A stretch of DNA of 64,000 nucleotides from positions 62,001 to 126,000 of IMG/VR virus record IMGVR_UViG_3300017528_000567, one strand, 5' to 3'. The notes beneath the pieces are model-generated. The model saw only the letters and a list, made by a program, of their open reading frames with translations. It was not told the DNA's origin and ran no database searches. Of this stretch, positions 537 to 59,849 are shown one piece after another. Numbering within the stretch: the first letter of the stretch is position 1; each line of letters opens with the position of its first letter. Made by a program: the position numbers and the translations under genes.

Positions 537-3500
537 CAGCCCTCCGTAAATTCTCGGTAGGTGACGGTTAGGACGCCTAGGTCGATGACCTCCATCGCAG
601 ACACCGAAATATCGTGAGATCCCTTGTCACCACGGATGATGTAGCTCACCGCGTATGCGTGATTCGTGGGGCTGTCAGGCGGGACCCCCGACCCGAGCAA
701 GGACACCACCACGTGATTGGCAGTCAGCCGCAGTCGCTCCGCTTCGTATTGGTTGGGCAGAAACCCCTGGCCAGCCAAAGTTGCATCATCCGAATACCCA
801 GCGATGATGGCGCCACCTGCCCCAATGATAAATGCCTGCCTCGCAGCCGTGCAGACGGAGGTCAAGTCAAGGGACATGAGCATCACAATGTCGTCCTGGA
901 ACACGCCCTTGTGCTCCGTGTCGAGCCCCCCACCATCAGTCGTCGGAAACTCAAGCGGATTGGTCAGGATGTACCCGAGGTTCCCGCCATTATCCAACGA
1001 GTCAACACGCCTGTAGGTCGACAGCACGTCTTCCCGCAGCTTCTGGCTTCCATCCGCGTAGGCCATCTTTGCCATGGGCAGAACGTTGAACTGCACTCCG
1101 CTGCTATTATCGATGGCCGAATCCACATTGGACTGCGCCACTCCTTGCCCGATGAGCTTCTTGTTCAGGTCAAGCGAGACGTTGTTCCGCAGGATGGGAT
1201 CCGTCGAATCCTTCGACGCACCACGGGCAAGCTGGACGGTCGTTTCGATATCGATGTCATTCAGGATCGCCTGCTTTGCGAGCACGTCCGCGGTCACATG
1301 CCGCTTGTTGTCGAGGATGATCTGCAGCTGCTGCAGCAGATCGTTGATCACGTAGGTGACCGTGAAGTTCTCGTCATGGAAGTAGTCGACCGACACCTCC
1401 TGGCCGCTCGCAATAGCTGACGCCGCCGTGCGAACGATTTTAGCCGGAGTAGTCGGGGTCCCCGCGACAATGTCAAAGTCCGGCGCCGCCGTTCCCGGAG
1501 GCTGATACTCGAAGGTGCGCTGCTCATTGAACACCCGGATCGTGGTCGTATTGGCCCCGATCGAATCCAGCGGCTCTTGCTCAAAACCGATCAAGACGTG
1601 GAGCTCATCGTTCACCGTGATCGACTCGCCACTCGGAACGTTCCCCGACGGCGTAATGGCTACGTAGTTCTTGGCGATCGTGCTTTCACCATCAAGCAAC
1701 GGATCATCTGTCTTGTAGAGCTTGTAGTGGACACCTTCCGTCAAGGATCCGCTCACCTCACCGACAACCGACACTACGCGTCGCACGGGCTGCAACGTCA
1801 TGTAGAGCTTGTTCTGCGCTTGGAAACGATAGTCCGCGATGACGTTGTCATCCAAGGTCGTGATGGGCTGCGGCACAGCGTTGTCGATCTGAAATGTATT
1901 GTAAGTCAGAATGGTCACGCCATTGAGGTCGTAGTCAGCGCCCAGCGTGACATTGCGCACCCCCAAGCCCTGGGGCGCGTTGTTCAAGATCTCGATCAGC
2001 GGCGTAGTGGGGGTGACGCGCGAATCGAGCACGCGGAAGATAAGGTTGATAGGATCAAGGACCTCGCATTGCGTGTTGAGAGCCACGTCGAATGTGAACG
2101 CGAAGCGGTCCTGGACCTGGCGCTCCTGCAAGCCCTGAACCCAAACATCCACCTTGCCGCCAATGTGCTTGTTTCGCACATCGTCATAATCGCGCATCAT
2201 GAGCGGGTCGCCGCTCTTGATGATCTTGTTGCGGATAACTCCGACTTTGGCAGCGGCCGTAGCCGCGTAACCGGTCGCGGTGCCAGTATCGACAGACGCA
2301 AACCCGAGCATCGCGCGGGCGGCCAAATCTGCGTTGGTCTCCCGGTCGTCACCAAATACCGTTGCCCCCTCGTTCACCGCCTTGAGGCCGCTCACACCGG
2401 TGATCGATTGAATCGACTTCGCAGGGACGTTCCCCGCTTTACCGGCCTGCTCGGCCACGATCGGCACACGGATCTCGTAACGCTTCTCGTTGAAGTTGTA
2501 GTACGAGTCAGCATTGGCAGCGACCATCGTGAAGGAACCGCCGATGCGATACCGCTGCGAGTTGATCCCCGCGCTGGCATCTGCGCTGGAGACAGCAAAC
2601 GAGCCCGCGGGAACCTGAATGTTCTTGGTCGGGCGAGTAGCGGTATACAGCGTGAGGGTGCCAACTGACTGTCGACCCGGAAGCCTCGCCTTGTTGACGT
2701 TGCCGGCCAGCTTGTCGAACTGCTGGTCTATCAGATTCTGTACCGCCTGATCATTGACCAAGCCAAGCGCTGCCTTGAGCGCCTGCTTGTACGCACTGCT
2801 AATAACCGGGTCCGACTCGCCACTGCCACTAACGTTATCCAGTGCGAGCAAGGTCAGGAAGCTTTGACTCCGACTCACGAAGTCCACGAGAAACCAGATG
2901 CGCTCGGCTTCAGAGGCGAACGGGTCGATGTCGACATCCCGGGTTACCGACCCCGGGATCAGCGAGATCTCCGCGTTGACTCGAAGGACCGCGTTCATGT
3001 AATCGACCACGATCTGAAGCTGCGTCCGTCCAGGCAAGTCTCGGATGGTCGTGTCGACGATCAGCGGGGACCCGAGCACCTCTTGCGAGTAAGGCGTCTC
3101 GATTTCCCTGCTGGTGACCGAATCGAAGTAGACCCCTGTCGTCACGTAGTATAGCGGACTCGTGCTCGGGACATTCACGAACTGATCAGTGTTGATGATC
3201 CCCGTCCCGCCGCTTCGATTGTGGCTGAACACCACGAACTCATGCATCTCGTAGTTCTGGAATGTGCCCGTGAATCTGAACTCACCGGCTAGGTTCATGT
3301 TATCGTGGAATGAGTCCAATCGAACGGCGAGCTCGGTGCCAAACACATCCTCCTCGGAGATCCGCAGCCTGATTCGATTGGCGGAGCTCACATCCCAGAC
3401 CGCAAGATCATCGAATGCTCGGATGTTGTCTTGCTGAAACTCACTCGGGGCGTTGACCGGCTTCTCGTTGATCCGATAGTAGCCGTTCTCGCCGGCAGGC

Positions 3501-3970
3501 GTCGATGACGCATAGAAGTTGAAGCCGAGGAAGGTAGCCACCTCTGGGAACTCCACCGGCTTAGCCACCAGGATGTCCACTCGGTCCCGATGGCGAAGCA
3601 CGCGAATGCCAGTGGGGATCTGCGTCCCGGTCGTGTCGGTCGCCACAACTCTCGTAACGACAACCGAGGAAGTGGCAGATACCCCGCCCACTAGGTCAAT
3701 GGCACGGAGCAAGACCGTGTTTACTCCGAACTCGAGAGGCAGCCCGGTCGGGTAAACAGTAAGATTCGGAACCGTGAAGGTGAGGAGCACGAAGCTGACC
3801 AGGTTCGGATCGGCGACGAACTGGCCGCCATTCACAGAGACCTGGATCGCGACCGTATCGATGGCCACAATGCCTTCGACGACAATCGCCTCCTCGTTAG
3901 TCGAGAACACTAGGTTTGTAGTAAACCCACCACTGCCGTCTCTCAGCGCGATTTGCGGGGCACTCGCCAT
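536..3970 (-). CDS. Baseplate J-like wedge protein (T4 gp6 / P2 gpJ family), enlarged to 1144 aa
   Basis: Central gpJ-like segment (AEQAGKAGNVPAKSI...GDDRETNADLAARA...GGKVDVWV) and C-terminal KKLIGQGVAQS; position in the baseplate cluster. Extra beta-rich N- and C-terminal domains. Confidence 0.85.
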   Translation of the reverse strand: MASAPQIALRDGSGGFTTNLVFSTNEEAIVVEGIVAIDTVAIQVSVNGGQFVADPNLVSFVLLTFTVPNLTVYPTGLPLEFGVNTVLLRAIDLVGGVSATSSVVVTRVVATDTTGTQIPTGIRVLRHRDRVDILVAKPVEFPEVATFLGFNFYASSTPAGENGYYRINEKPVNAPSEFQQDNIRAFDDLAVWDVSSANRIRLRISEEDVFGTELAVRLDSFHDNMNLAGEFRFTGTFQNYEMHEFVVFSHNRSGGTGIINTDQFVNVPSTSPLYYVTTGVYFDSVTSREIETPYSQEVLGSPLIVDTTIRDLPGRTQLQIVVDYMNAVLRVNAEISLIPGSVTRDVDIDPFASEAERIWFLVDFVSRSQSFLTLLALDNVSGSGESDPVISSAYKQALKAALGLVNDQAVQNLIDQQFDKLAGNVNKARLPGRQSVGTLTLYTATRPTKNIQVPAGSFAVSSADASAGINSQRYRIGGSFTMVAANADSYYNFNEKRYEIRVPIVAEQAGKAGNVPAKSIQSITGVSGLKAVNEGATVFGDDRETNADLAARAMLGFASVDTGTATGYAATAAAKVGVIRNKIIKSGDPLMMRDYDDVRNKHIGGKVDVWVQGLQERQVQDRFAFTFDVALNTQCEVLDPINLIFRVLDSRVTPTTPLIEILNNAPQGLGVRNVTLGADYDLNGVTILTYNTFQIDNAVPQPITTLDDNVIADYRFQAQNKLYMTLQPVRRVVSVVGEVSGSLTEGVHYKLYKTDDPLLDGESTIAKNYVAITPSGNVPSGESITVNDELHVLIGFEQEPLDSIGANTTTIRVFNEQRTFEYQPPGTAAPDFDIVAGTPTTPAKIVRTAASAIASGQEVSVDYFHDENFTVTYVINDLLQQLQIILDNKRHVTADVLAKQAILNDIDIETTVQLARGASKDSTDPILRNNVSLDLNKKLIGQGVAQSNVDSAIDNSSGVQFNVLPMAKMAYADGSQKLREDVLSTYRRVDSLDNGGNLGYILTNPLEFPTTDGGGLDTEHKGVFQDDIVMLMSLDLTSVCTAARQAFIIGAGGAIIAGYSDDATLAGQGFLPNQYEAERLRLTANHVVVSLLGSGVPPDSPTNHAYAVSYIIRGDKGSHDISVSAMEVIDLGVLTVTYREFTEG

Positions 3971-4021
3971 CAGCCGACCTTTCCTTTCCCCGTGGCATTC
4001 GAAAGTCTACGCATATTGGAT

Positions 4022-5137
4022 TTAGCCACTGAGGGCGAACCCCGAAAGAGACTGTCGAATCCGCCCCGGATCGGACGCTTGAGGTAGCCTCAAGCCTCGC
4101 GTAAGTTGTATGGGGTCTGATGACCGGTTCTGAACCACGCAGTTGACAAAGATCACGGTAGGATCCTGAGTGCTCTGCTCCAGGTTCACTGACAACAAGC
4201 GCAGCGGATACTCTCTATCCGTGACCTCCTGTTGGATCTTCTCCTCTTGCTGCGTCTTGATCTTCTGCCAGCGAGAGAACGCCTGTTGAATATCGGCGGC
4301 GATGAAATTCTGAGTGAAGCCGTCGGAGGCCAGCTTCTTGCCGATCGCATCGAGCAACCCTGTGCCGTACCAGGTGTGAAACTGGTTGCTACCCCGGATC
4401 GTATAGAAATCCTTTTGGAGTTCCTGAATGAGCAGTCCCTCGTCTCGGATCTCGATCAAGTTGCCGTTAATGTCGTAGCGCCAGTCGTGCTCGTAGCCCG
4501 TCCCCCCGCAACGGCGACATTCAGAGAGCACCGTCGAGTAAGAGATCTCCACGAAGTTTGAAGCGCTGCGTAGCGGCTCGTCGAACACGATCAGGCGCGT
4601 CGGGCGGTCTGGCAGCGAGCTCGGGTCTCCGACTAACGTCCAACCGGGCACGCTAGTCTGTCCACGGTACTCATGATTAACAGTGAACCCGAAGAGCGTC
4701 GCCGCGGTGCTGTCCGCGTAGAGAAAAATGCTCACGTCCGGCCCCGTGTCACGCGAAGCGAATGAGAGCCGGTCGTTGCTCTCCGTGAATACCACGCCGG
4801 TGAACCGCTGATTGAGCAAAGCCACCATCTGTGGGGCGCCCATCTTGTTCACGTTTGGAAGGACCACTGTCTGTGGCGCCTCCTGGTTGACGCTCAGGCG
4901 GAAAACATTGGTGGTCGACGTGACGGTAAACGGTCCGCGCCGCGTCCCCGAAGCCTTGCCCGGCAGATACACCCCGGGCGACGGGGCCTGTATGGTGTGA
5001 TTGAGCAACACCCTGACTGAGGCCACCGCTGAGATCGGACGGAGCGGACGAACCGTCATGCGATCTGACGCCAAGTACAAAGCCTCTTCCGAGACCTCAT
5101 GTGGACATTGTTGGTCTATATGACGGTCTGCCGACAT
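4022..5137 (-). CDS. Baseplate wedge / sheath initiator with C-terminal gp25-like domain
   Basis: C-terminal LIQELQKDFYTIRGSNQFHTWYGTGL...VIFVNCVVQNRS resembles the gp25/gpW fold; CRRCGGTG Zn motif; adjacent to the gpJ-like gene. Confidence 0.7.
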   Translation of the reverse strand: MSADRHIDQQCPHEVSEEALYLASDRMTVRPLRPISAVASVRVLLNHTIQAPSPGVYLPGKASGTRRGPFTVTSTTNVFRLSVNQEAPQTVVLPNVNKMGAPQMVALLNQRFTGVVFTESNDRLSFASRDTGPDVSIFLYADSTAATLFGFTVNHEYRGQTSVPGWTLVGDPSSLPDRPTRLIVFDEPLRSASNFVEISYSTVLSECRRCGGTGYEHDWRYDINGNLIEIRDEGLLIQELQKDFYTIRGSNQFHTWYGTGLLDAIGKKLASDGFTQNFIAADIQQAFSRWQKIKTQQEEKIQQEVTDREYPLRLLSVNLEQSTQDPTVIFVNCVVQNRSSDPIQLTRGLRLPQASDPGRIRQSLSGFALSG

Positions 5138-5889: not shown

Positions 5890-5961
5890 AATGCCTCCAC
5901 CTTGCCCTTCACATCTAGACCCGCGGGCCTATAGGAGGCGGAGCATCGAACGATTAGGATC

Positions 5962-8148
5962 TTAGAAGATCAGATCTAGCGCCGTGACGTACGGCGTAAC
6001 GTCCGCTGCCACATACGCCATAGCAGCGCCTGCCGTGTAGCCCGTCGGCCCGCTCGGCGGCGGCGTGCCGCCAGCGTTGTCAATCAACGATATCCACTCA
6101 CCCACCCCACCGTCCGTGACTGGCACGTTGAGAATGTAGAAGCCAAGATTCAGACTTTCGACGAAGTCCAGGATCCCAGTCAGGTGCTTCAGGAACCTTT
6201 CGAGCGTGTCGATCTTTGCCACAATCAGGTCAATGAACGCGCGGAGCTCGGCCATCACCCCGGAGTAGGCGTCCGTCAAGGCCTGCATCTTGGCCAAGAG
6301 CTCGTAGATTATCTGGCCGGACCACGGCGCGATATCTCGCAGCAGGCTCAGCTGAACCCAATCCGGAGGGGCTCCGACGAGCGTGAAAGCCTTGCAGTGG
6401 TCCACCGCAACCACTACGTTCAAGCGAACCGTGGCATCCTCAAACACCTTGCTGTAGAGGACCCCAGCCGCCACAATATCTTGCCCAGCAGCTTGCGGGT
6501 CCTGCACCTTCGTGATCTCGAAAACCAGCTCGGCGAGGTTAGTAGCGTTGAGGCGGTCAATGTCAGGCTGACCCCTGGGAAAGGTGCCCTCCATGAGTGC
6601 CTTGAAGGACAAAGCCGCGTTGGCCTGGAGCATCGCGCTCCCCACAATATTCGCGAGCCTGGCCGCGTTCCGAACCACCCGAGAGTCATTCCAGGGGAAC
6701 TCGGGCACCAGACCCGTAGCCGGGCTCGGCTGAAACGCCGTTGTGACGGAGAGGGGGCTGCCGGCGTACTGGCCAACCAAGGGGATGGCCTCGAACGCAG
6801 TCAGTGGCCCCGCCAGATTCTGGAGCGAGCCCTTCCCGATCGAGGTGTCAGGCGTCGGGGGGACGGCCTCGCCGTTGTCATCAATCTCCTGCCCCGCCGG
6901 CAGCGGCATATGGAAGTTGAATGAAAATGCGGTCTGAAACAACCGCTTCAACGTTTCAATGACGTCGAACTTCTCCGGATAGGTCGGGATCATGATCGGT
7001 GCAATAGGGGATGCTCGGCCCATCACCGGCTTATCGTTCTCATCCTCAGCGGGCCACTCAAGGTATGGATTCCCATCAATCGCATTGAGCTTAGGCGGGT
7101 CAAACGTAAGAATCTGGGGTTCGCGCTGCACAGCCAAAGACCCACTGAACGCCCTGACCCGATAGTAGTATGTCTTGTTCGGTACGACGTCCGAATCAAT
7201 GTAGCGAAACGTTCCAAGCTGCCCGATCAGAAATGTTGAGGTTTCCTCAGCGGCATCAATCACGATGTAGTACTGGAACTTAAGGAACGGGTTGCCGTAC
7301 TGGTCCATGAGCCGGATGCGGCGTATGAGGTACTCCCCTGAACCGCGGGCGCGAAACTGTGTCACTTGGCTCATCATGACCGGGCCAGCGGCACTCCGGT
7401 CATTCAAATCCGCAATCGAGACCTCACCGACCGCGGGGTTGGTCACACTTTTCTCGATGAGGAACTTTGGCGGCACAAAGTTTACCGAGGCCCCCTCAAT
7501 GAGGTCCGAGAAACCGGGGTCCCCAGGCGTGCTGACCGGGGGCAACGACCACTCAACCGCAATTTGCGTCGGCTGCTGTTGGTAGACCTTGGTGATTGAC
7601 AGGATGCGGTCACCGTTGGCCCCGACCGGCAACACCTTGAAGTTGGCCGGCGCTTGGTATTCAGGAGTCACGAACTCCTTGCCAAAGAATTTCGCCAGCA
7701 CCTCGCAATACCGCATGAGGGACAACGGGTCCCCGGTATCCGCGACGATGAGCACGAACCCGCCCTTGGTCGTGCCAGCGACAGGCTGCGGGCGATTCGG
7801 ATCTCGCGCGTCGTAGAGCCCGGCCTTGAATCGGCTTATAAACGAGCGGTAACCGCCGCTGGCGTGCTTGAAGTTGGGGTCGGTCTGCGGATTGGGGAAG
7901 TCGAACCACCCGTACATCCCGGTCCGCTTCATGGTCTCAAACAGGTCTAACACAAGCTTCAAGACGGCCTCGACCAGCGCCTTGATTGGGTTGCCGAAGT
8001 CTACAAGAAATACTTTGACAGATTCGAGTATGGCCTTCACCACCTCCAGATAGACCACGAGCGCTTCCATCGCCGCTCTGGCCCCCTCCAAGAGGTCCTT
8101 GCCCGGGATCTCAATCGCCAACGACTCCCAATTTGGATTTGCAGCCAC
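5962..8148 (-). CDS. Putative baseplate-associated protein with Fn3-like segment (728 aa)
   Basis: Long ORF with GTG start; Fn3-like YIDSDVVPNKTYYYRVRAF; amphipathic helices at both ends. Confidence 0.75.
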   Translation of the reverse strand: MAANPNWESLAIEIPGKDLLEGARAAMEALVVYLEVVKAILESVKVFLVDFGNPIKALVEAVLKLVLDLFETMKRTGMYGWFDFPNPQTDPNFKHASGGYRSFISRFKAGLYDARDPNRPQPVAGTTKGGFVLIVADTGDPLSLMRYCEVLAKFFGKEFVTPEYQAPANFKVLPVGANGDRILSITKVYQQQPTQIAVEWSLPPVSTPGDPGFSDLIEGASVNFVPPKFLIEKSVTNPAVGEVSIADLNDRSAAGPVMMSQVTQFRARGSGEYLIRRIRLMDQYGNPFLKFQYYIVIDAAEETSTFLIGQLGTFRYIDSDVVPNKTYYYRVRAFSGSLAVQREPQILTFDPPKLNAIDGNPYLEWPAEDENDKPVMGRASPIAPIMIPTYPEKFDVIETLKRLFQTAFSFNFHMPLPAGQEIDDNGEAVPPTPDTSIGKGSLQNLAGPLTAFEAIPLVGQYAGSPLSVTTAFQPSPATGLVPEFPWNDSRVVRNAARLANIVGSAMLQANAALSFKALMEGTFPRGQPDIDRLNATNLAELVFEITKVQDPQAAGQDIVAAGVLYSKVFEDATVRLNVVVAVDHCKAFTLVGAPPDWVQLSLLRDIAPWSGQIIYELLAKMQALTDAYSGVMAELRAFIDLIVAKIDTLERFLKHLTGILDFVESLNLGFYILNVPVTDGGVGEWISLIDNAGGTPPPSGPTGYTAGAAMAYVAADVTPYVTALDLIF

Positions 8149-49070: not shown

Positions 49071-49868
49071 CTATAACAGTTCGGCCTCCGAAAACGCCTG
49101 GTAAACCGCTGTCAAGATCAGCTTACGGCTGCGGGCGTTGAGATCCTTCTCGATCGCCGACCACGTAAAAGACAGCCGCAACGACGTGTCGACTAACTGG
49201 CGCCCGCTCATGTGCTCCTTGAGCTTGTGTGCCATTCGCACTGTCTCATCGACCACCTGTTGCATGAACGCTCTGACCTCTTTCGGGTCGTTTACATAAC
49301 TTTTCTGGTCCTTGACCTTGTGGTCCTCGTCATGCTCGTACTGACGCGGTGCGCGAAACGCCGCCTCCGCGGCGTGGGTCACCTCGTGAATCAAGATGCT
49401 GTACAGACCATACGGAAGGCATGTCTCGTGAGTACACTCGCCCAACGGCTGAAAGTACTCTGTGACAAAGTTGGTGAGGTCTCGATCCGGCCCGTTAGTA
49501 CCCAGGTACTCGTTCGGAGAAATGGCGCCATTCAGCCAAAGTACGACCTGCACGACGGCAGAGCCATTTTCGAAGCGCCGTCGCCCGGCCTCTCCGCCTA
49601 GCACCGGAAACTTCTTGGCGCTGGAAGCAGCTGCAATCACGATGACATCGATCCGGAGCTGCTCCTGCCCGTCGACCGAATCCGCGTAGAAATTCGTTTC
49701 GGCCAGCCCGGTTCGAGCACTGCTGCCGATCGGCTGGTCCGGATGCGGGTGACGCTTCAGCCAGCGCTTTATCTGCGGGACCAAGTCCTTTTCGACGGCA
49801 TACCTGATCGTTGCCTTGTCTATGCGAATCGGTCGCGCCGCCATCCTGCGGTCGTAACTGTACCCCAC
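49071..49868 (-). CDS. Zincin-like HExxH protein
   Basis: ILIHEVTHAAE with downstream YVNDPKEVRAF; AGGAGG RBS; N-terminus MGYSYDRR. Confidence 0.65.
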   Translation of the reverse strand: MGYSYDRRMAARPIRIDKATIRYAVEKDLVPQIKRWLKRHPHPDQPIGSSARTGLAETNFYADSVDGQEQLRIDVIVIAAASSAKKFPVLGGEAGRRRFENGSAVVQVVLWLNGAISPNEYLGTNGPDRDLTNFVTEYFQPLGECTHETCLPYGLYSILIHEVTHAAEAAFRAPRQYEHDEDHKVKDQKSYVNDPKEVRAFMQQVVDETVRMAHKLKEHMSGRQLVDTSLRLSFTWSAIEKDLNARSRKLILTAVYQAFSEAELL

Positions 49869-49903
49869 CTTGGCCTCCTAGCCTAGCCATCCGCCGAGCA
49901 CGA

Positions 49904-50530
49904 CTAGAACCCGATGAACTTCTGCGGGCTCAAGACACCGCGGCCCACGTAGGGGCCAAACGCGCTTCGCAGGCCCATGCCGAACCGGGGCTGCTGCAGA
50001 CCCTTGATGATGTTCACGGTTGCCTTCGTGTTCTCTAACTGTTTGTCGAACTGGTCAGACAGCGACTGGAACGCGCCTTCGTACTTGCTCGACTTCTCGA
50101 GGTCAAGAGAGACCCCGCCGATCGAGTAGGAGTTATGAGCGAGCACCCCGTTGGACAGAACGAAGTTCTGCGGACCGGGCACCGACAGATCGTAGGTGTG
50201 GTCCACCGGGGGCAGCACCAGAATGCTCTCCACACGCTCCAAGCCCACAACGCCGTCTCGCACCACAACCAGGCTAGAGCCGACCACAAGGGCGTCGACC
50301 CGCACCGGAACTAGCGCGCCCTCTCTAAGCCCGAACAAGCTGTGATCGCCTGTCACGGATACGGAAGCGGAGCCCACGCTTACCCGGTAGATCGGCTTGT
50401 TTGGCGTCGAGTGGCGCAGCACCGCTGTTACGACTGCCTCCACCGCCGACTGGCCCTCCACCGAGCGGACCTTGAGAGTGCCAGCTGTGTACGCCGCCTT
50501 GATTTTGTCCCTACGATGCCTGTCTATCAC
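49904..50530 (-). CDS. Split-intein C half (133 aa) fused to the C-extein (75 aa) of a head-tail adaptor-like protein
   Basis: GTG 50530 preceded by GGGAGG; block B VTGDH, block F YDLSV...NF, terminal LAHN followed by Ser (SYSIGG). Confidence 0.88.
   Translation of the reverse strand: MIDRHRRDKIKAAYTAGTLKVRSVEGQSAVEAVVTAVLRHSTPNKPIYRVSVGSASVSVTGDHSLFGLREGALVPVRVDALVVGSSLVVVRDGVVGLERVESILVLPPVDHTYDLSVPGPQNFVLSNGVLAHNSYSIGGVSLDLEKSSKYEGAFQSLSDQFDKQLENTKATVNIIKGLQQPRFGMGLRSAFGPYVGRGVLSPQKFIGF
50132..50530 (-). mobile_element. IntC fragment of a naturally split intein
   Basis: HINT motifs TGDH, YDLSVPGPQNFVLSNGVLAHN, and +1 Ser. Confidence 0.9.
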
Positions 50531-51476
50531 ACACCCTCCCGAAAGCCTTGACGACACGCTTAACGCACTTGGCTGGGTCTGCCTTTAGGTCGCACTCCTT
50601 GATGCGGATCACGCACCATCCCAGCCTCTTTAGGTACGTGGTCTTCCGACGATCTAAGGCGCGGTTTGCATCACACCCGGGAAAGCCGCAGCTGTCACAC
50701 CCGTGCCAGTAACAGCCGTCCATTTCCACGGCGACAAGCTCATCAGGCAGAGCCTCGTCGACCCGATAATACCCGACTTCGTACTCGCGCTTCACGGGCA
50801 GCCCGGCGTCAACGAGCAACTTCTCCAGCTCCTGATGCGGTCGCGTGAAGGTTTGCGTGATGCTCTTTCGCGCCTTAGCCGCTAGCTCCTGAGACAGCTC
50901 AGAATTCTCCCGATGCCACCTCGTGACCTTCTTTCGCATCGAGCCATCCGCCCAGCGCTCTTTAGACTCTCGCGACAGCCGCCGCCTGACAGCCGGCTGC
51001 TGGTTCAGCTTCCTCAAATGCTCACTCGCCTGCGCTCTATAGCCGGATTCCATCATGCGCTTTGAAGCTGCAGATATCTGTGCCTTAGTCACTTCGCCTT
51101 CCGCGGTCGCGAACCTCGCTGTGAGCACCTTAGACTGATACTGTTTCTCAGCCTCTGTCTTAGCCCGACGATCAGACACCACTGTGCAGGCAAGCGCGTC
51201 AGCGCCGTGCTTCGCGGCATACTCCTCGAAAGACATGTTCGCGCATGCCCGCACGTGCTTCGGCATAATAGCCCCCGCCCAAGCGCCGCACTCTCGGCAC
51301 ACCACATAGTCTCTACCCTCAACGAGCCGAGAGGTACTGGCCTCAAGAATACCCTTGCCATTAGAGACAAGGGTCCCGTTCAACACCAGCGTCTCGACAT
51401 GACGGTAATTCATGCCGTACTTCAAGATCACGTAGCGAAACGAGACGTAACCCTCAGGAAGTGCCCAGGATGCCAT
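50511..51476 (-). CDS. Free-standing Vsr/DUF559-like homing endonuclease
   Basis: C-terminal EYEVGYYRVDEAL...VEMDGCYWHGC...LGWCVIRIKE; N-terminal CRECG...H Zn finger and basic helical repeats; overlaps both intein-half genes. Confidence 0.85.
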   Translation of the reverse strand: MASWALPEGYVSFRYVILKYGMNYRHVETLVLNGTLVSNGKGILEASTSRLVEGRDYVVCRECGAWAGAIMPKHVRACANMSFEEYAAKHGADALACTVVSDRRAKTEAEKQYQSKVLTARFATAEGEVTKAQISAASKRMMESGYRAQASEHLRKLNQQPAVRRRLSRESKERWADGSMRKKVTRWHRENSELSQELAAKARKSITQTFTRPHQELEKLLVDAGLPVKREYEVGYYRVDEALPDELVAVEMDGCYWHGCDSCGFPGCDANRALDRRKTTYLKRLGWCVIRIKECDLKADPAKCVKRVVKAFGRVCDRQAS

Positions 51477-52239
51477 ACAACTCCTCTAGGGTAAGTTGAA
51501 TCTCCTCACCCTCGACCAGAACGGTGACCTGGGTATCGCCCACAAGCGAAAATTCGTCCGCGATCCAATTCAATCGCAACGCCTGGATAGCGAACATCAT
51601 AGCCCCAGTTAGGAGCAGTGTACGCCACTCCGGACGAAACATCACCATCTGGTCAACCGTCTGGAACGGCGTGCGCGGAGGTGCCGACGAGACCAAGTCA
51701 AGCGAACGCGCCAAGTACTCCTGCAACTCCACGTCTTCCCAGATGTAACCGAACACCCTGCTGAACTGCTGCACAGTTTCTTCGTGTGAAGGTGGCCGAA
51801 AATGGTAGTTGCGATCTGGATTGTTATCCCTTAACAGGATTCTCAGGCGTCCCATCAGGTCGTACTCGATCGCCGTCGCGTTGATTGCACCCCCAGTGAT
51901 CATGCTCGCGCTGCTAGTAGACAGCCCCGCCTTGTCGGTGACCGAGAACTCCTGCACCACCTGTTGCTGCGCACCGCCGATGATCTCACGGAACGTCCAG
52001 CGGACCCGGTACTCGCCCAGATTGGCGTCAAGCGGAACGATGATGCTCGCGAAGTACTCCCCAACCGACGGGTTGGCCGGAATGCGCAAAGGGATACCAA
52101 CAAGCACCTCCTGACCCGTCGTGAAGTCGTACAGGGCGTACGAAATCTCCGCGGCGTTCACCGGCGTGTTGGCGGCATTGACCAGATAGATGTTTAGATC
52201 ATTCCGGCCAAGCTGCTGTCCCCTATAGAAGTTAGTCAT
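51454..52239 (-). CDS. Head-tail adaptor-like protein N-extein (230 aa) fused to the split-intein N half (31 aa)
   Basis: ...NWIADEF|SLVGDTQV..., block A-like with Ser1; N-terminal Ig-like domain and a helical connector-like domain; neck cluster position. Confidence 0.8.
   Translation of the reverse strand: MTNFYRGQQLGRNDLNIYLVNAANTPVNAAEISYALYDFTTGQEVLVGIPLRIPANPSVGEYFASIIVPLDANLGEYRVRWTFREIIGGAQQQVVQEFSVTDKAGLSTSSASMITGGAINATAIEYDLMGRLRILLRDNNPDRNYHFRPPSHEETVQQFSRVFGYIWEDVELQEYLARSLDLVSSAPPRTPFQTVDQMVMFRPEWRTLLLTGAMMFAIQALRLNWIADEFSLVGDTQVTVLVEGEEIQLTLEELYGILGTS
51457..51549 (-). mobile_element. IntN fragment (31 aa) of a naturally split intein
   Basis: SLVGDTQVTVLVEGEEIQLTLEELYGILGTS then TGA; resembles the intein block A consensus (C/S)LxGDTxV. 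Confidence 0.8.
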
Positions 52240-52262
52240 GCGTCACCTAGCCCCCTGACGGT

Positions 52263-52664
52263 TCAGTCCTCTGACTTGGGCGCGGGCGGCGGCTCAGACT
52301 TCGTCTCCTGCTTCTTGTTGTGCTTGGCCCTAGACTGCAGGTCCTTCATCAACGCGTCCTCGTGCTCCTTGTCTTCCTTCTTCGCGGGCTTGGCAGGCTC
52401 CTTTGGCTTCCCCTCCTGCTTTTTGTTGTGCTTGGCTCTAGACTTCAGGTCCTTCATCAACTTGTCTTCGTCGCTCGCGTCGTCGGGTTTAGCGACAGAA
52501 TGGGATCTGGCGTCTGCATTGGGGTGCTTCTGCAGATACTTGTTGAGAGCGTCATTGCTCGGGAAGGTCTTAGCGAAACGATGCGCGACCGTCTCCGCTA
52601 GCGAAGCCTCCCTCAGCGCGAGCTCGAACGCCTGCAGGGCCGATTTTCTCGTGACGTGTCTCAT
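52263..52664 (-). CDS. Charged low-complexity protein with an internal repeat
   Basis: 133 aa; two copies of ED(K/A)LMKDL(K/Q)SRAKHNKKQE. Confidence 0.75.
   Translation of the reverse strand: MRHVTRKSALQAFELALREASLAETVAHRFAKTFPSNDALNKYLQKHPNADARSHSVAKPDDASDEDKLMKDLKSRAKHNKKQEGKPKEPAKPAKKEDKEHEDALMKDLQSRAKHNKKQETKSEPPPAPKSED
52305..52461 (-). repeat. Two 49-nt direct repeats, 108 nt apart, within the CDS
   Basis: 52305-52353 and 52413-52461 are near-identical. Confidence 0.85.
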
Positions 52665-53887: not shown

Positions 53888-54283
53888 CTACCCTTCGATG
53901 CAAATCAGCTGCCCGGCTGGCATACGGACCTGATCCGACACATCCACCAACTTCGGCGCACTCAAGTTGCCGATGTACAGGATGTTGCCACCCGAGCTCG
54001 CGTCTATGAAGGCAAACGCGACAATCGAACCCCAAAGCGCTTGAGCTACGGGGAACAACACCTCAACGGCACTTACAACTTGGCCATTCACCGGCTCCGT
54101 GAACGTTACGAGCTGGCGAAAATAGCCGCCGCCCGCAACCTCGGTGCCAGCGCTGTCAACACCAGGGGCTACCGTGTAGAGCGCCACATAAACTGCCGGT
54201 GGCGGCACGAACGGGATGCCACGAAGCGCCGCGTTCAAGAAATTATTGTCAAGATAGATCGACTTAGGCATAGCTAGCAGCAA
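53888..54283 (-). CDS. Gp80-like phage fibre/structural protein, paralogue 2
   Basis: YLDNNFLNAALRG...VYVALYT...TEVAGGGYFRQLVTF...WGSI...DASSGGNIL. Confidence 0.8.
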   Translation of the reverse strand: MLLAMPKSIYLDNNFLNAALRGIPFVPPPAVYVALYTVAPGVDSAGTEVAGGGYFRQLVTFTEPVNGQVVSAVEVLFPVAQALWGSIVAFAFIDASSGGNILYIGNLSAPKLVDVSDQVRMPAGQLICIEG

Positions 54284-55523: not shown

Positions 55524-55916
55524 TCAGCTCTCTGTAACGGTGATCGCGCCTACAGCAAAGTTCAGCTGATCTCCAACGTCGACAAGCTTCTCAGTTCCGA
55601 GATCGCCGAAGTAGAGTTGATTGCCACTAGTGAGCGCATCGCAAATCGCGACCGCCTCAACCGTGCCCCATGAAGCGGTAGCAACAGGGAAAGTCACAGC
55701 AGCAGTGTTAGCTGTGGAACCTGCCGCCGCAGGTGAGAACGTAACGGCTACGCGAACATAGGCTCCGCCCGTTACCTCAGTGCCACCGCCACCGGTACTA
55801 GCGTCCGGCGCCGTAGTGAAAAGCGCAATGTAGCGCGCCGAAGGAGAAGTATAGGCGGCGCCCGTCAAAACAGCATTGAGCAGCGCATTAGAGAGAGTTT
55901 GCTTTTTGGCAGCCAT
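55524..55916 (-). CDS. Gp80-like phage fibre/structural protein, paralogue 1
   Basis: LSNALLNAV...YIALFTTAP...GGGTEVTGGAYVRVAVTF...TFPVATASWGTV...DALTSGNQL. Confidence 0.85.
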   Translation of the reverse strand: MAAKKQTLSNALLNAVLTGAAYTSPSARYIALFTTAPDASTGGGGTEVTGGAYVRVAVTFSPAAAGSTANTAAVTFPVATASWGTVEAVAICDALTSGNQLYFGDLGTEKLVDVGDQLNFAVGAITVTES

Positions 55917-58964: not shown

Positions 58965-59849
58965 CTACTTATCTGTGCAAGTTGGCGGTGCCCCGCGACC
59001 CAAAGCGCAGGCATCCTCATACCCGAGCTCGATCAGCTCACGCACGGCACCCGGCTCAAACGTCAACCCATCCCCCGCGATGGTGCCCAAGTCAATCTTG
59101 GGTTTTAGAACGCGGAGGGTGACCTTCCGATAGTCCGCATGCGCATTCCGTAGGTCACAGATCTTCAGGTCGTCGCGCATGACCTCGTTGATCAAAAGGT
59201 TGACGGCCCGCAACGCCAAGTCAGGCAGCGCCGATTTCCCCGCGCACTTGAACGGGGCTGGCAACCGGGGGTCGGTGCACAGGATCACGTCAATCTCGGT
59301 TGCTCCGGCCCGGACAGCCTCACCCAGTGGGGTAACCGACCGTAGCGCCCCGTCCGCCCAGAGCTCGCCCTCGACTTTGACGGGCAGGAACATCCCGGGG
59401 AACGCCGACGACGCCAGCACCCAAGACAAGATGTCCATCTCGGTCTCATCCACGGTGCGGCTCTCACCGGAGTCCCAAGAAACCGCCAAGATGCGGAGCA
59501 TCCTACCCGAGCTCCGGATCTTCTCCACGTCCAACGAGCTGCGGACCCACTTATGCAGCGGCTCCGAGTTATAGACAGAGGGCTTCCACAAGGCTGATGC
59601 CATGCCAAACGGCCACCAAGACTTGCGAACCTTCGAGGTGTCCACGTCCAGCCAGAACCGATTCAAGTCTCCCCATGCCACCTTCGGAGACCCCTTTGGT
59701 GCTTGACACAGGACGGCCGCATTCAGAGCGCCGACAGAGATACCGGCGATCAGGTCGTAATCGACCCCGTCCTCTGCCATCCACTTCTTTAGTACCCCGA
59801 CCTCGTAGGCCCCCTTTGACCCGCCGCCACTAAGAACCAAAGCTCTCAT
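58965..59849 (-). CDS. Patatin-like phospholipase
   Basis: GGGSKG oxyanion loop, GISVG nucleophile elbow, ASSAFP and DGA catalytic Asp motif. Confidence 0.92.
   Translation of the reverse strand: MRALVLSGGGSKGAYEVGVLKKWMAEDGVDYDLIAGISVGALNAAVLCQAPKGSPKVAWGDLNRFWLDVDTSKVRKSWWPFGMASALWKPSVYNSEPLHKWVRSSLDVEKIRSSGRMLRILAVSWDSGESRTVDETEMDILSWVLASSAFPGMFLPVKVEGELWADGALRSVTPLGEAVRAGATEIDVILCTDPRLPAPFKCAGKSALPDLALRAVNLLINEVMRDDLKICDLRNAHADYRKVTLRVLKPKIDLGTIAGDGLTFEPGAVRELIELGYEDACALGRGAPPTCTDK

Follow-up and report, generated by a model that had tools for sequence, protein, structure and literature searches.

How can a virion protein of a huge phage be produced when its gene is broken into two pieces, with an overlapping endonuclease gene between them? 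This question is raised by the locus at positions 49904 to 52239 of a 64,000-nucleotide stretch of the IMG/VR virus record IMGVR_UViG_3300017528_000567, the whole of which is referred to as the window. An earlier reading of the letters alone (the original prediction) had proposed a virion neck gene fractured by an atypically split intein with a serine nucleophile (Ser1), with a free-standing Vsr-like endonuclease between the two halves. Uninterrupted homologues, a HINT-fold model of a cis homologue, and independent assemblies supported this proposal, and we consider it very likely that the locus has the anatomy of a functional split intein in a fractured gene. The comparisons also support the view that the mature protein of about 305 amino acids (aa) would be obtainable only by protein trans-splicing.

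All genes in the stretch around the locus are encoded on the minus strand. The three open reading frames (ORFs), designated genes A, B, and C, and the parts of the host protein (exteins) and of the intein (IntN and IntC) that they carry are located as follows:

51454..52239, minus strand: gene A, 261 aa, ending in ..NWIADEF, then SLVGDT..GILGTS and a stop
51550..52239, minus strand: N-extein, residues 1-230 of gene A, a beta-sandwich domain and the first part of a helical domain
51457..51549, minus strand: IntN, 31 codons (SLVGDT..GILGTS), encoding the nucleophile Ser1 together with strands beta1-beta2 and helix alpha1
51454..51456, minus strand: stop codon of gene A, directly after IntN
50511..51476, minus strand: gene B, 321 aa, the ORF of the free-standing endonuclease, with an ATG start preceded by GGAG
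49904..50557, minus strand: gene C, 217 aa as the longest ORF
50132..50530, minus strand: IntC, 133 codons, from a probable GTG start at 50530 to the terminal His-Asn
49904..50131, minus strand: C-extein, 75 aa (SYSIGGVSLDLEK..), with the Ser+1 codon at 50129..50131 and the stop at 49904..49906
50132..51549, minus strand: the whole mobile insert (IntN, endonuclease gene, and IntC), 1418 nucleotides (nt), which is missing from the related locus L003

Genes A, B, and C use three different frames, as their starts at 52239, 51476, and 50557/50530 leave remainders of 0, 2, and 1 modulo 3. The overlap between genes A and B is 23 nt, and that between genes B and C is 20 nt if gene C starts at 50530 or 47 nt if it starts at 50557. 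No Shine-Dalgarno sequence precedes the upstream GTG at 50557, from which the protein would gain nine residues. The sequence GGGAGG is found 4 nt upstream of the GTG at 50530, which is the gene C start named by the original prediction, and the homologous IntC proteins start exactly at the matching position. Therefore, the start of IntC was placed at 50530. Each of the three genes has its own Shine-Dalgarno sequence and start codon, and neither a sigma-70-type promoter nor a terminator was found inside the locus. Together with the overlapping ORFs, this suggests a single transcript with coupled translation. What had been observed at first was confirmed in every detail, including the end of gene A in DEF followed by a 31-aa IntN. 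The base composition of the insert was no different from that of the genome, giving no sign of a recent foreign origin, and no paralogue of the endonuclease or the intein was found elsewhere in the 64-kb window.

The exact borders of the insert were obtained from relatives without it. The search with gene A yielded 1271 homologues, the closest of which outside the window, P0002, is an uninterrupted protein of 305 aa. The N-extein could be aligned with residues 1-230 of P0002 without a gap and with 227 of the 230 positions identical, and the C-extein with residues 231-305, also gap-free, with 73 of 75 identical, which amounts to 300/305 for both exteins together, far more than coincidence could produce. 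At the DNA level, positions 52343..51550 of the window correspond to positions 5897..6690 of L003, the locus of P0002, and positions 50129..49881 correspond to 6693..6942, both with 87% identity (blastn). The alignment to this empty locus bounds the insert at 51549..50132, and its length of 1418 nt is not a multiple of three. Since the extein DNA was only 87% identical while the proteins were about 98% identical, both halves are evidently under purifying selection, and the gene is not dead.

A further uninterrupted homologue, gp319 (283 aa), is encoded by the cultured jumbo phage Tunturi_5. Its residues 1-230 align with residues 1-230 of gene A and its residues 232-283 with residues 144-195 of gene C, the two alignments flanking gp319 residue 231. 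In a tblastn search of annotated phage genomes, the only matches were Tunturi_5 gp319, LR745208, and phage G gp165 (unannotated). The junction DEF-S-YSIGG, which trans-splicing was expected to restore, is contiguous in the uninterrupted proteins P0053, P0054, and P0067. Intein-less homologues of the kind that the original prediction had called for thus exist.

The state of the insertion site was then scored in the 120 closest homologues. Ninety-five were scored as uninterrupted, about 20 were N-halves ending in a Ser1 IntN of 31-43 aa, and one, P0077, carried the intein in cis. The residue at the +1 position of the 95 uninterrupted proteins was Asp in 61, Asn in 18, Ser in 12, Gly in two, Thr in one, and Glu in one, whereas it was Ser in 26/26 IntC-bearing sequences. 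That a position variable in empty alleles is always Ser in the presence of the intein is, at the sequence level, the best reason to believe that the intein has been maintained in an active state. In P0077 (455 aa), a contiguous mini-intein of 159 aa without an endonuclease occupies the same site. This mini-intein is covered from end to end by the window's IntN and IntC, with the break between ..ELFEVVQGDG and KTRKDIRKAF...

The layout of an N-half, a Vsr-like ORF, and an IntC-half was also found in L006, L008, and L009, which come from independent samples, and in L011-L013. The extein identity of these fractured relatives is 60-93%, and the IntC ORF of L006 comprises 208 aa. Among the fractured loci, the ORFs vary in their overlaps and relative frames, as would not be expected of a conserved frameshift or of a sequencing error common to them all. 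The concern that assembly frameshifts had broken up a single cis-intein gene was thus not borne out, as the same three ORFs were present in independent assemblies.

Some phages with 93%-identical exteins have inteins and endonucleases that are only about 53% identical, so the insert either evolves much faster than the host gene or passes between phages. In a word-indexed protein search with the IntC region, identities went no higher than 51% and the protein of the window itself was missing from the results, while an IntC with 53% identity exists in L009. A deviating form is P0076 (310 aa), an N-half in which the IntN continues without a stop into approximately 45 extra residues rich in Cys, Gly, and Ser, which might reflect decay or rearrangement of a fractured locus.

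Gene C matched the Pfam model Intein_splicing with an E-value of 8.4e-11, above the cut-off, and contained block B (TGDH), block F (YDLSVPGPQNF), and block G (VLAHN), followed by SYSIGG... The class 1 nucleophiles are Ser231 of gene A, directly after ..DEF, and the Ser+1 that follows ..VLAHN in gene C. To describe the conservation of these motifs, we used an alignment of the cis homologue P0077 with 25 IntC halves (alignment A3, 26 sequences). No variation was seen at Ser+1, in the terminal His-Asn or block F, at the Asp-His of block B, or at the His of the NX motif approximately 20 residues upstream of block B, and the Thr of block B was also kept across the 26 IntC sequences, so the motifs first read in gene C are invariant or nearly so throughout the family. 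The NX motif of the window IntC reads ..AVLRH.., with Arg before the His as expected for Ser1 inteins. An NX His preceded by Arg or Lys is specific to Ser1 inteins and critical for splicing (Pasch et al. 2023, PMC10189870). The residue before this invariant His was Arg, Lys, or Gln in the 26 sequences. On the other side of the break, Ser1 was present in all of the approximately 20 IntN tails examined, and the window IntN could be aligned with the first 30 or so residues of the P0077 mini-intein and with 19 other Ser1 IntN tails. A short IntN of 31 aa combined with a long IntC of 133 aa carrying NX, B, F, and G represents an atypical split pattern.

The IntN contains six acidic and no basic residues, giving a net charge of -6, and the first 23 residues of IntC from 50530 include seven Lys/Arg, so that its N-terminus has a charge of about +5. 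The corresponding N-terminus in L009 has a charge of about +4. The charge complementarity proposed for the two halves therefore holds for this sub-lineage, represented by the window and L009, but not for the family as a whole, in which the IntN tails are all acidic (-2 to -9) while the first 25 residues of most IntC halves are near neutral. Whether the intein is free of cysteine depends on the start of gene C. There is no Cys in IntN or in IntC read from 50530, but one Cys would be introduced in the nine-residue leader if the 50557 start was used. Most relatives have one to three Cys in IntC.

The fold was assessed using an AlphaFold2 model of the natural cis homologue P0077 built with alignment A3. 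The predicted local distance difference test score (pLDDT) was 85-98 in the IntC-equivalent part and about 50-71 in the IntN-equivalent part, where the lower values were due to the lack of alignment depth. The model contained strands at residues 228-232 and 238-242, a helix at 243-248, a low-confidence loop at 249-253, and a second helix at 254-265. The boundary between IntN and IntC in the alignment coincides with the loop at 249-253. Since this loop follows the first alpha-helix, the break lies at the atypical site S2 as defined in PMC13014065. A Foldseek search of the model against PDB returned more than 45 solved inteins with E-values down to 1e-9 and target TM-scores of 0.7-0.82 over 160-190 columns, including the fused cysteine-less Aes123 PolB1 (9hth) and VidaL (6vgv). 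By sequence, the PDB inteins matching P0077 were PhoRadA, TFIIB, PolC, DnaE, and gp41-1. The single HINT fold expected of the two halves was accordingly seen in the model of the cis homologue, which here stands in for the window's own IntN/IntC pair.

The C-terminal half of gene B matched the Pfam families MTES_1575 (3.6e-11; 43.4 bits, cut-off 38.2) and DUF559 (1.4e-4; 22.1, cut-off 20.6) above their cut-offs, and the Vsr model itself below its cut-off (5.9e-4; 20.1, cut-off 27). It also matched endonuclease families in PHROG. The nuclease motifs ..VDEALP..VEMDGCYWHGC..DRRKTTYLKRLGW.. are conserved in four orthologues, and a weak alignment with E. coli Vsr (1cw0, E 0.39) covers the catalytic motifs. 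The N-terminal part contains a Ros/MucR-like segment resembling a zinc finger. Orthologues with 45-53% identity are located at the same place in L006, L008, and L009. These matches agree with the description of gene B as a Vsr-like free-standing endonuclease between the halves.

The host protein proved more difficult to name. Neither extein half matched a PHROG family in the profile scan, and no Pfam family matched the host protein, either as halves or at full length. However, 42 of 54 full-length uninterrupted orthologues matched PHROG 17327, a head-tail connector protein family, with a best E-value of 6e-6. P0002 itself matched it with 8.8e-4 over residues 170-275, across the splice junction, which explains why the halves alone were silent. 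The GenBank record of Tunturi_5 gp319 bears the name of a head-tail connector, its authors having used Phold for annotation. The AlphaFold2 model of P0002 had a pLDDT of 61, with a confident N-terminal beta-sandwich, a helical middle part, and a disordered yet highly conserved Gly-rich tail. Its comparison with PDB gave no match at E<=1e-3 and no solved adaptor, a result whose weight is limited by the low quality of the model, and the Foldseek matches were just generic beta-sandwiches over residues 1-101. Comparison with BFVD returned unnamed phage proteins only, and a profile search of the PDB sequences with the host protein family gave 0 matches. The gene order around the locus, described below, is compatible with a connector role. 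The assignment as a head-tail adaptor thus depends on the weak-to-moderate PHROG 17327 match, the gp319 annotation, and the gene order, with no similarity to a solved adaptor fold found, and the host protein is likely, though not established, to be a head-tail connector or neck component.

Splicing, homing, and the role of the product in the neck are what we infer for this locus, in the following way. A class-1 intein of 164 aa with Ser1 and Ser+1 would sit between Phe230 and residue 231 of a huge-phage virion protein of approximately 305 aa. A gene for a Vsr-like (EDxHD-type) homing endonuclease would have lodged in the coding sequence of the intein, in the loop after the first helix (S2), bringing along a stop codon for the upstream piece as well as a ribosome-binding site and a start codon for the downstream piece. 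The three overlapping ORFs would be co-transcribed, after which the acidic 31-aa IntN tail of piece A would dock on the 133-aa IntC of piece C with its basic N-terminus, completing the HINT fold. Splicing would proceed via oxyester intermediates, with an N-O shift at Ser1, transesterification to Ser+1, cyclisation of the terminal Asn, and an O-N shift, and would release the mature protein of 305 aa, in which residue 231 would be Ser. The endonuclease would cut intein-less alleles in co-infecting relatives, so that the whole 1.4-kb insert would spread by homing.

Several points weigh against this reading. Both splicing and endonuclease activity at the locus are predictions from the sequence and from the model of the cis homologue. 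The fold evidence was obtained on a cis homologue, with an intein sharing about 46% identity with the window's IntN/IntC pair, and the IntN part of that model reached only moderate confidence (pLDDT 50-71). Residue 231 is mostly Asp or Asn in the intein-less relatives, so the spliced product would carry the minority residue Ser. Moreover, the connector function relies on a weak PHROG match and the annotation of others, and the poor model of the host protein fits no solved adaptor. As an alternative, the intein might be dead, with the halves of the virion protein held together non-covalently by intein-derived fragments or acting separately, as in the NrdA of Aeromonas phage Aeh1. Splicing being a prediction only, and non-covalent assembly of a fractured phage enzyme through mobile-element-derived domains being documented in PMC3045599, this alternative has something in its favour, but it appears unlikely here. 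Throughout the 26 IntC sequences, diverged as they are, and the approximately 20 IntN tails, Ser1, the NX His, Thr..His of block B, Asp of block F, His-Asn, and Ser+1 are all kept, and a +1 residue that varies when the site is empty and is always Ser with the intein is hard to explain without selection for splicing. The gene might instead be a decaying pseudogene, killed by the endonuclease insertion in a phage that does not need the protein or uses another copy, since selfish insertions can inactivate genes and the search for a second copy was confined to the 64-kb window. The differences between the exteins and the intact orthologue are nearly all synonymous, however, all three ORFs are intact with ribosome-binding sites, and the layout persists in relatives that have diverged to an extein identity of 60-93%, making this explanation very improbable.

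Two further alternatives, in which the break in the gene is only apparent, have hardly any probability left. Three overlapping ORFs in different frames could arise from two indel errors in what is really one ORF, encoding a cis-intein with an in-frame endonuclease domain, and the first homologue search had a length range that did not extend to proteins above approximately 460 aa. Against such an artefact, the same stop after IntN, the separate endonuclease ORF, and the separately started IntC were found in L006, L008, L009, L011, L012, L013, and LR745208, which stem from different samples and pipelines, with overlaps and relative frames that vary between the assemblies. In addition, the endonuclease follows helix alpha1 instead of lying between blocks B and F, the canonical place of an endonuclease domain, and every ORF comes with a Shine-Dalgarno sequence and a start codon of its own. 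The endonuclease gene could also reside in a self-splicing intron, with RNA splicing restoring a contiguous cis-intein gene. Vsr-like endonucleases are indeed present in group I introns as well (PMC2677866, PMC3239194), and intron-rich structural genes of phages are known (PMC7886860). Nevertheless, the Rfam search of 49500..52600 at E<=1 detected neither a group I or group II intron nor any other RNA family, and the endonuclease ORF overlaps both flanking ORFs, leaving no non-coding room for a ribozyme core. A split intein joining the two halves of the protein therefore remains the preferred explanation of the locus.

The same gene family is interrupted at a second position. A search of 1.84 billion cluster representatives yielded 253 clusters of the host-protein family, the best 150 of which were classified with hidden Markov models of the extein and intein parts. 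The insertion site of the window, after residue 230, was designated site b, and the second site, after ..LRD(N/Q), was designated site a. Site a harbours a homologous Cys1 intein that is 30-35% identical to the site-b intein (E about 1e-15). It is split at the same structural point as at site b, but by a TnsA-like endonuclease. Every combination occurs: site a holds a cis intein and site b a split one in P0004/L009, site a is split and site b empty in LR745208, and elsewhere a cis intein at site b is accompanied by either a split or a cis intein at site a. In 11 clusters (50% identity), the middle piece consists of the IntC of site a, extein residues 138-230, and the IntN of site b. The corresponding arrangement of five ORFs, comprising three gene pieces and two endonuclease genes, was verified in L012:3573-7415 and L013:3633-7333. 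The order is an N piece with a Cys1 IntN, a TnsA-like gene, the middle piece (IntC, extein 138-230, and Ser1 IntN), a Vsr-like gene, and finally the IntC with the C-extein. The protein encoded by these loci would need two trans-splicing reactions. We found no description of a natural three-piece gene with two split inteins in the literature, our coverage of which was incomplete.

The LR745208 locus (L002, LR745208.1 352000-360000) belongs to an uncultured phage of 485 kb and is fractured at site a into ORFs at 4582..5079, 3508..4551, and 2705..3598, all on the minus strand. The break reads ..LRDQ, then CLGGEE.. on one side and ..GHN, then CPDRDYHF on the other, with a related Cys1 intein and a TnsA-like endonuclease, and site b is empty (..EEFDYSIGG). 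Endonuclease-like ORFs flank this locus, one of 374 aa upstream and one of 477 aa downstream that contains both DUF7487 and a finger of Ros/MucR-like type. In P0240 and P0249, a Ser1 IntN-like tail (..NPDRNY, then SVDGKE..LEELWEII..) followed by the end of the protein is located six residues downstream of site a, which is possibly a third insertion point.

The neighbourhood of the window locus contains few genes that can be named, as the Pfam and PHROG scans of neighbouring genes returned almost no names. The two gene groups used as landmarks for the gene order are the following:

53891..54283 and 55527..55916: two paralogous head proteins matching PHROG 240
539..3970: a Baseplate_J protein, further along the strand

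However, glycosyltransferases and a UvrD helicase are encoded between the PHROG 240 head genes and the Baseplate_J gene. Among the unnamed genes 5' of the head-protein genes, a patatin-like phospholipase is encoded at 58968..59849 on the minus strand (Pfam, 1.5e-31). The gene directly downstream of the locus, at 49071..49868 on the minus strand, encodes a protein of 265 aa in which an HExxH motif (..LIHEVTHAAE..) occurs. The L003 orthologue has 399 aa (L003:6922-8121), and approximately 373 nt at the 5' end of its gene are absent from the window.

Other members of the host-protein family are organised differently. In Bacillus phage G (L010, JN638751.1), the two parts are apparently separate genes, gp160 and gp165, with no intein evident. 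By tblastn, gp165 of phage G, a protein of 179 aa, corresponds to the C-terminal half of Tunturi_5 gp319, and gp160 matches the N-terminal beta-sandwich by fold. In P0222, a protein of 4922 aa, 25 separate stretches match residues 68-131 of gene A, indicating that the N-terminal beta-sandwich also serves as a tandem repeat module.

Fractured genes with split inteins and Vsr-like endonucleases were described by Dassa et al. 2009 (PMC2677866). The locus of the window resembles them in that the halves lie on one strand, the split-intein halves are located at the break with a Vsr-like gene between them, and the origin is a phage. For 15 loci, that paper gives an overlap of 6-69 bp between the 3' end of the endonuclease gene and the start of the downstream IntC, a range that includes the overlap of 20 nt (start at 50530) or 47 nt (start at 50557) observed here. 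The terminase locus in the same study likewise has an unusual break, with an IntC carrying every N-terminal motif except N1 (PMC2677866). By contrast with these genes, the host here is a connector-like virion protein instead of an enzyme of DNA metabolism or packaging, the nucleophiles are Ser1 and Ser+1, and close relatives have the same site either empty or occupied by a cis mini-intein. A later representative of the Vsr-like (EDxHD) homing endonucleases is I-Bth0305I (PMC2677866, PMC3239194). Gene B shares with this group a Glu..Asp-Gly..Trp-His..Asp nuclease pattern that aligns to the Vsr motifs, a likely DNA-binding N-terminus, and a free-standing position in a phage gene, a likeness at the level of Pfam families and motifs only.

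Among the split inteins, AceL TerL and GOS TerL are reported in PMC13014065 as S2-split inteins with an IntN of 25-37 aa in phage genes from metagenomes. They are similar to the window intein in their short IntN (31 aa here) and in the split after the first alpha-helix. The likeness is one of architecture; both are described there as cysteine-dependent and located in the large terminase. PolB16 OarG (PMC10189870), which resides in a PolB DNA polymerase, shares with the window intein the nucleophiles Ser1 and Ser+1, a natural split at an atypical site, and the NX His preceded by Arg or Lys (..LRH.. here). However, it is split after beta2 (S1) and has an IntN of 15 aa and two non-essential Cys, whereas the window intein is split at S2 with an IntN of 31 aa and has no Cys from the probable start. 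Aes123 PolB1, CL, and CLm (PMC13014065, PMC11923092) use the same Ser-based class 1 chemistry, and 9hth was among the fold matches of P0077, but Aes123 is naturally split at the canonical site, in PolB, and its short-IntN versions were engineered.

According to a 2026 paper, PolB16 is the sole natural cysteine-less atypically split intein known, with its split at S1, and the known S2-split inteins are cysteine-dependent (PMC13014065). Papers from 2025-2026 describe natural cysteine-less split inteins as very few and the atypically split PolB16 OarG as splicing slowly. In the literature covered, no natural cysteine-less split intein outside PolB-type polymerases was named. The combination of features that the original prediction had called unusual is thus rare, but not without precedent, since atypical splits with an IntN of 15-37 aa, including AceL TerL, GOS TerL, and VidaL, are known (PMC13014065), and PolB16 OarG is a natural Ser1/Ser+1 case (PMC10189870). 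There are published precedents for the fractured gene, the Vsr-like endonuclease, and the atypical split, and one for a natural atypical split without cysteine. What is new here is the allele, the host protein, and the insertion site, together with Ser1/Ser+1, the S2 split, and the absence of Cys when IntC is read from its probable start.

To a more far-reaching interpretation we give a chance somewhat short of even. The element of the window would be a working cysteine-free Ser1/Ser+1 intein split at S2, the first outside PolB and the first in a virion structural protein, and would represent one of the states taken by a single intein lineage in colonising two or perhaps three sites, at the least two, of the gene. 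Each of the two sites studied is found empty, occupied in cis, or split, the endonuclease family being TnsA-like at site a and Vsr-like at site b, and the pieces of L012 and L013 would be joined by two orthogonal trans-splicing reactions. If this is true, L012 and L013 represent a natural version of engineered tandem trans-splicing.

One gene family shows all stages of the gene-breaking model of 2009, from the empty site through the cis mini-intein to the mini-intein invaded by a free-standing endonuclease, and it does so at a non-canonical position and with two endonuclease families. Since all stages occur side by side, the origin of atypical split sites can be tested by comparison and experiment. 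For protein engineering, the family provides dozens of natural Ser1/Ser+1 variants with an IntN of 31-43 aa and cis relatives as structural templates, while the three-piece genes offer intein pairs that are presumably orthogonal. For the biology of these phages, the finding means that a conserved virion protein may depend on post-translational ligation.

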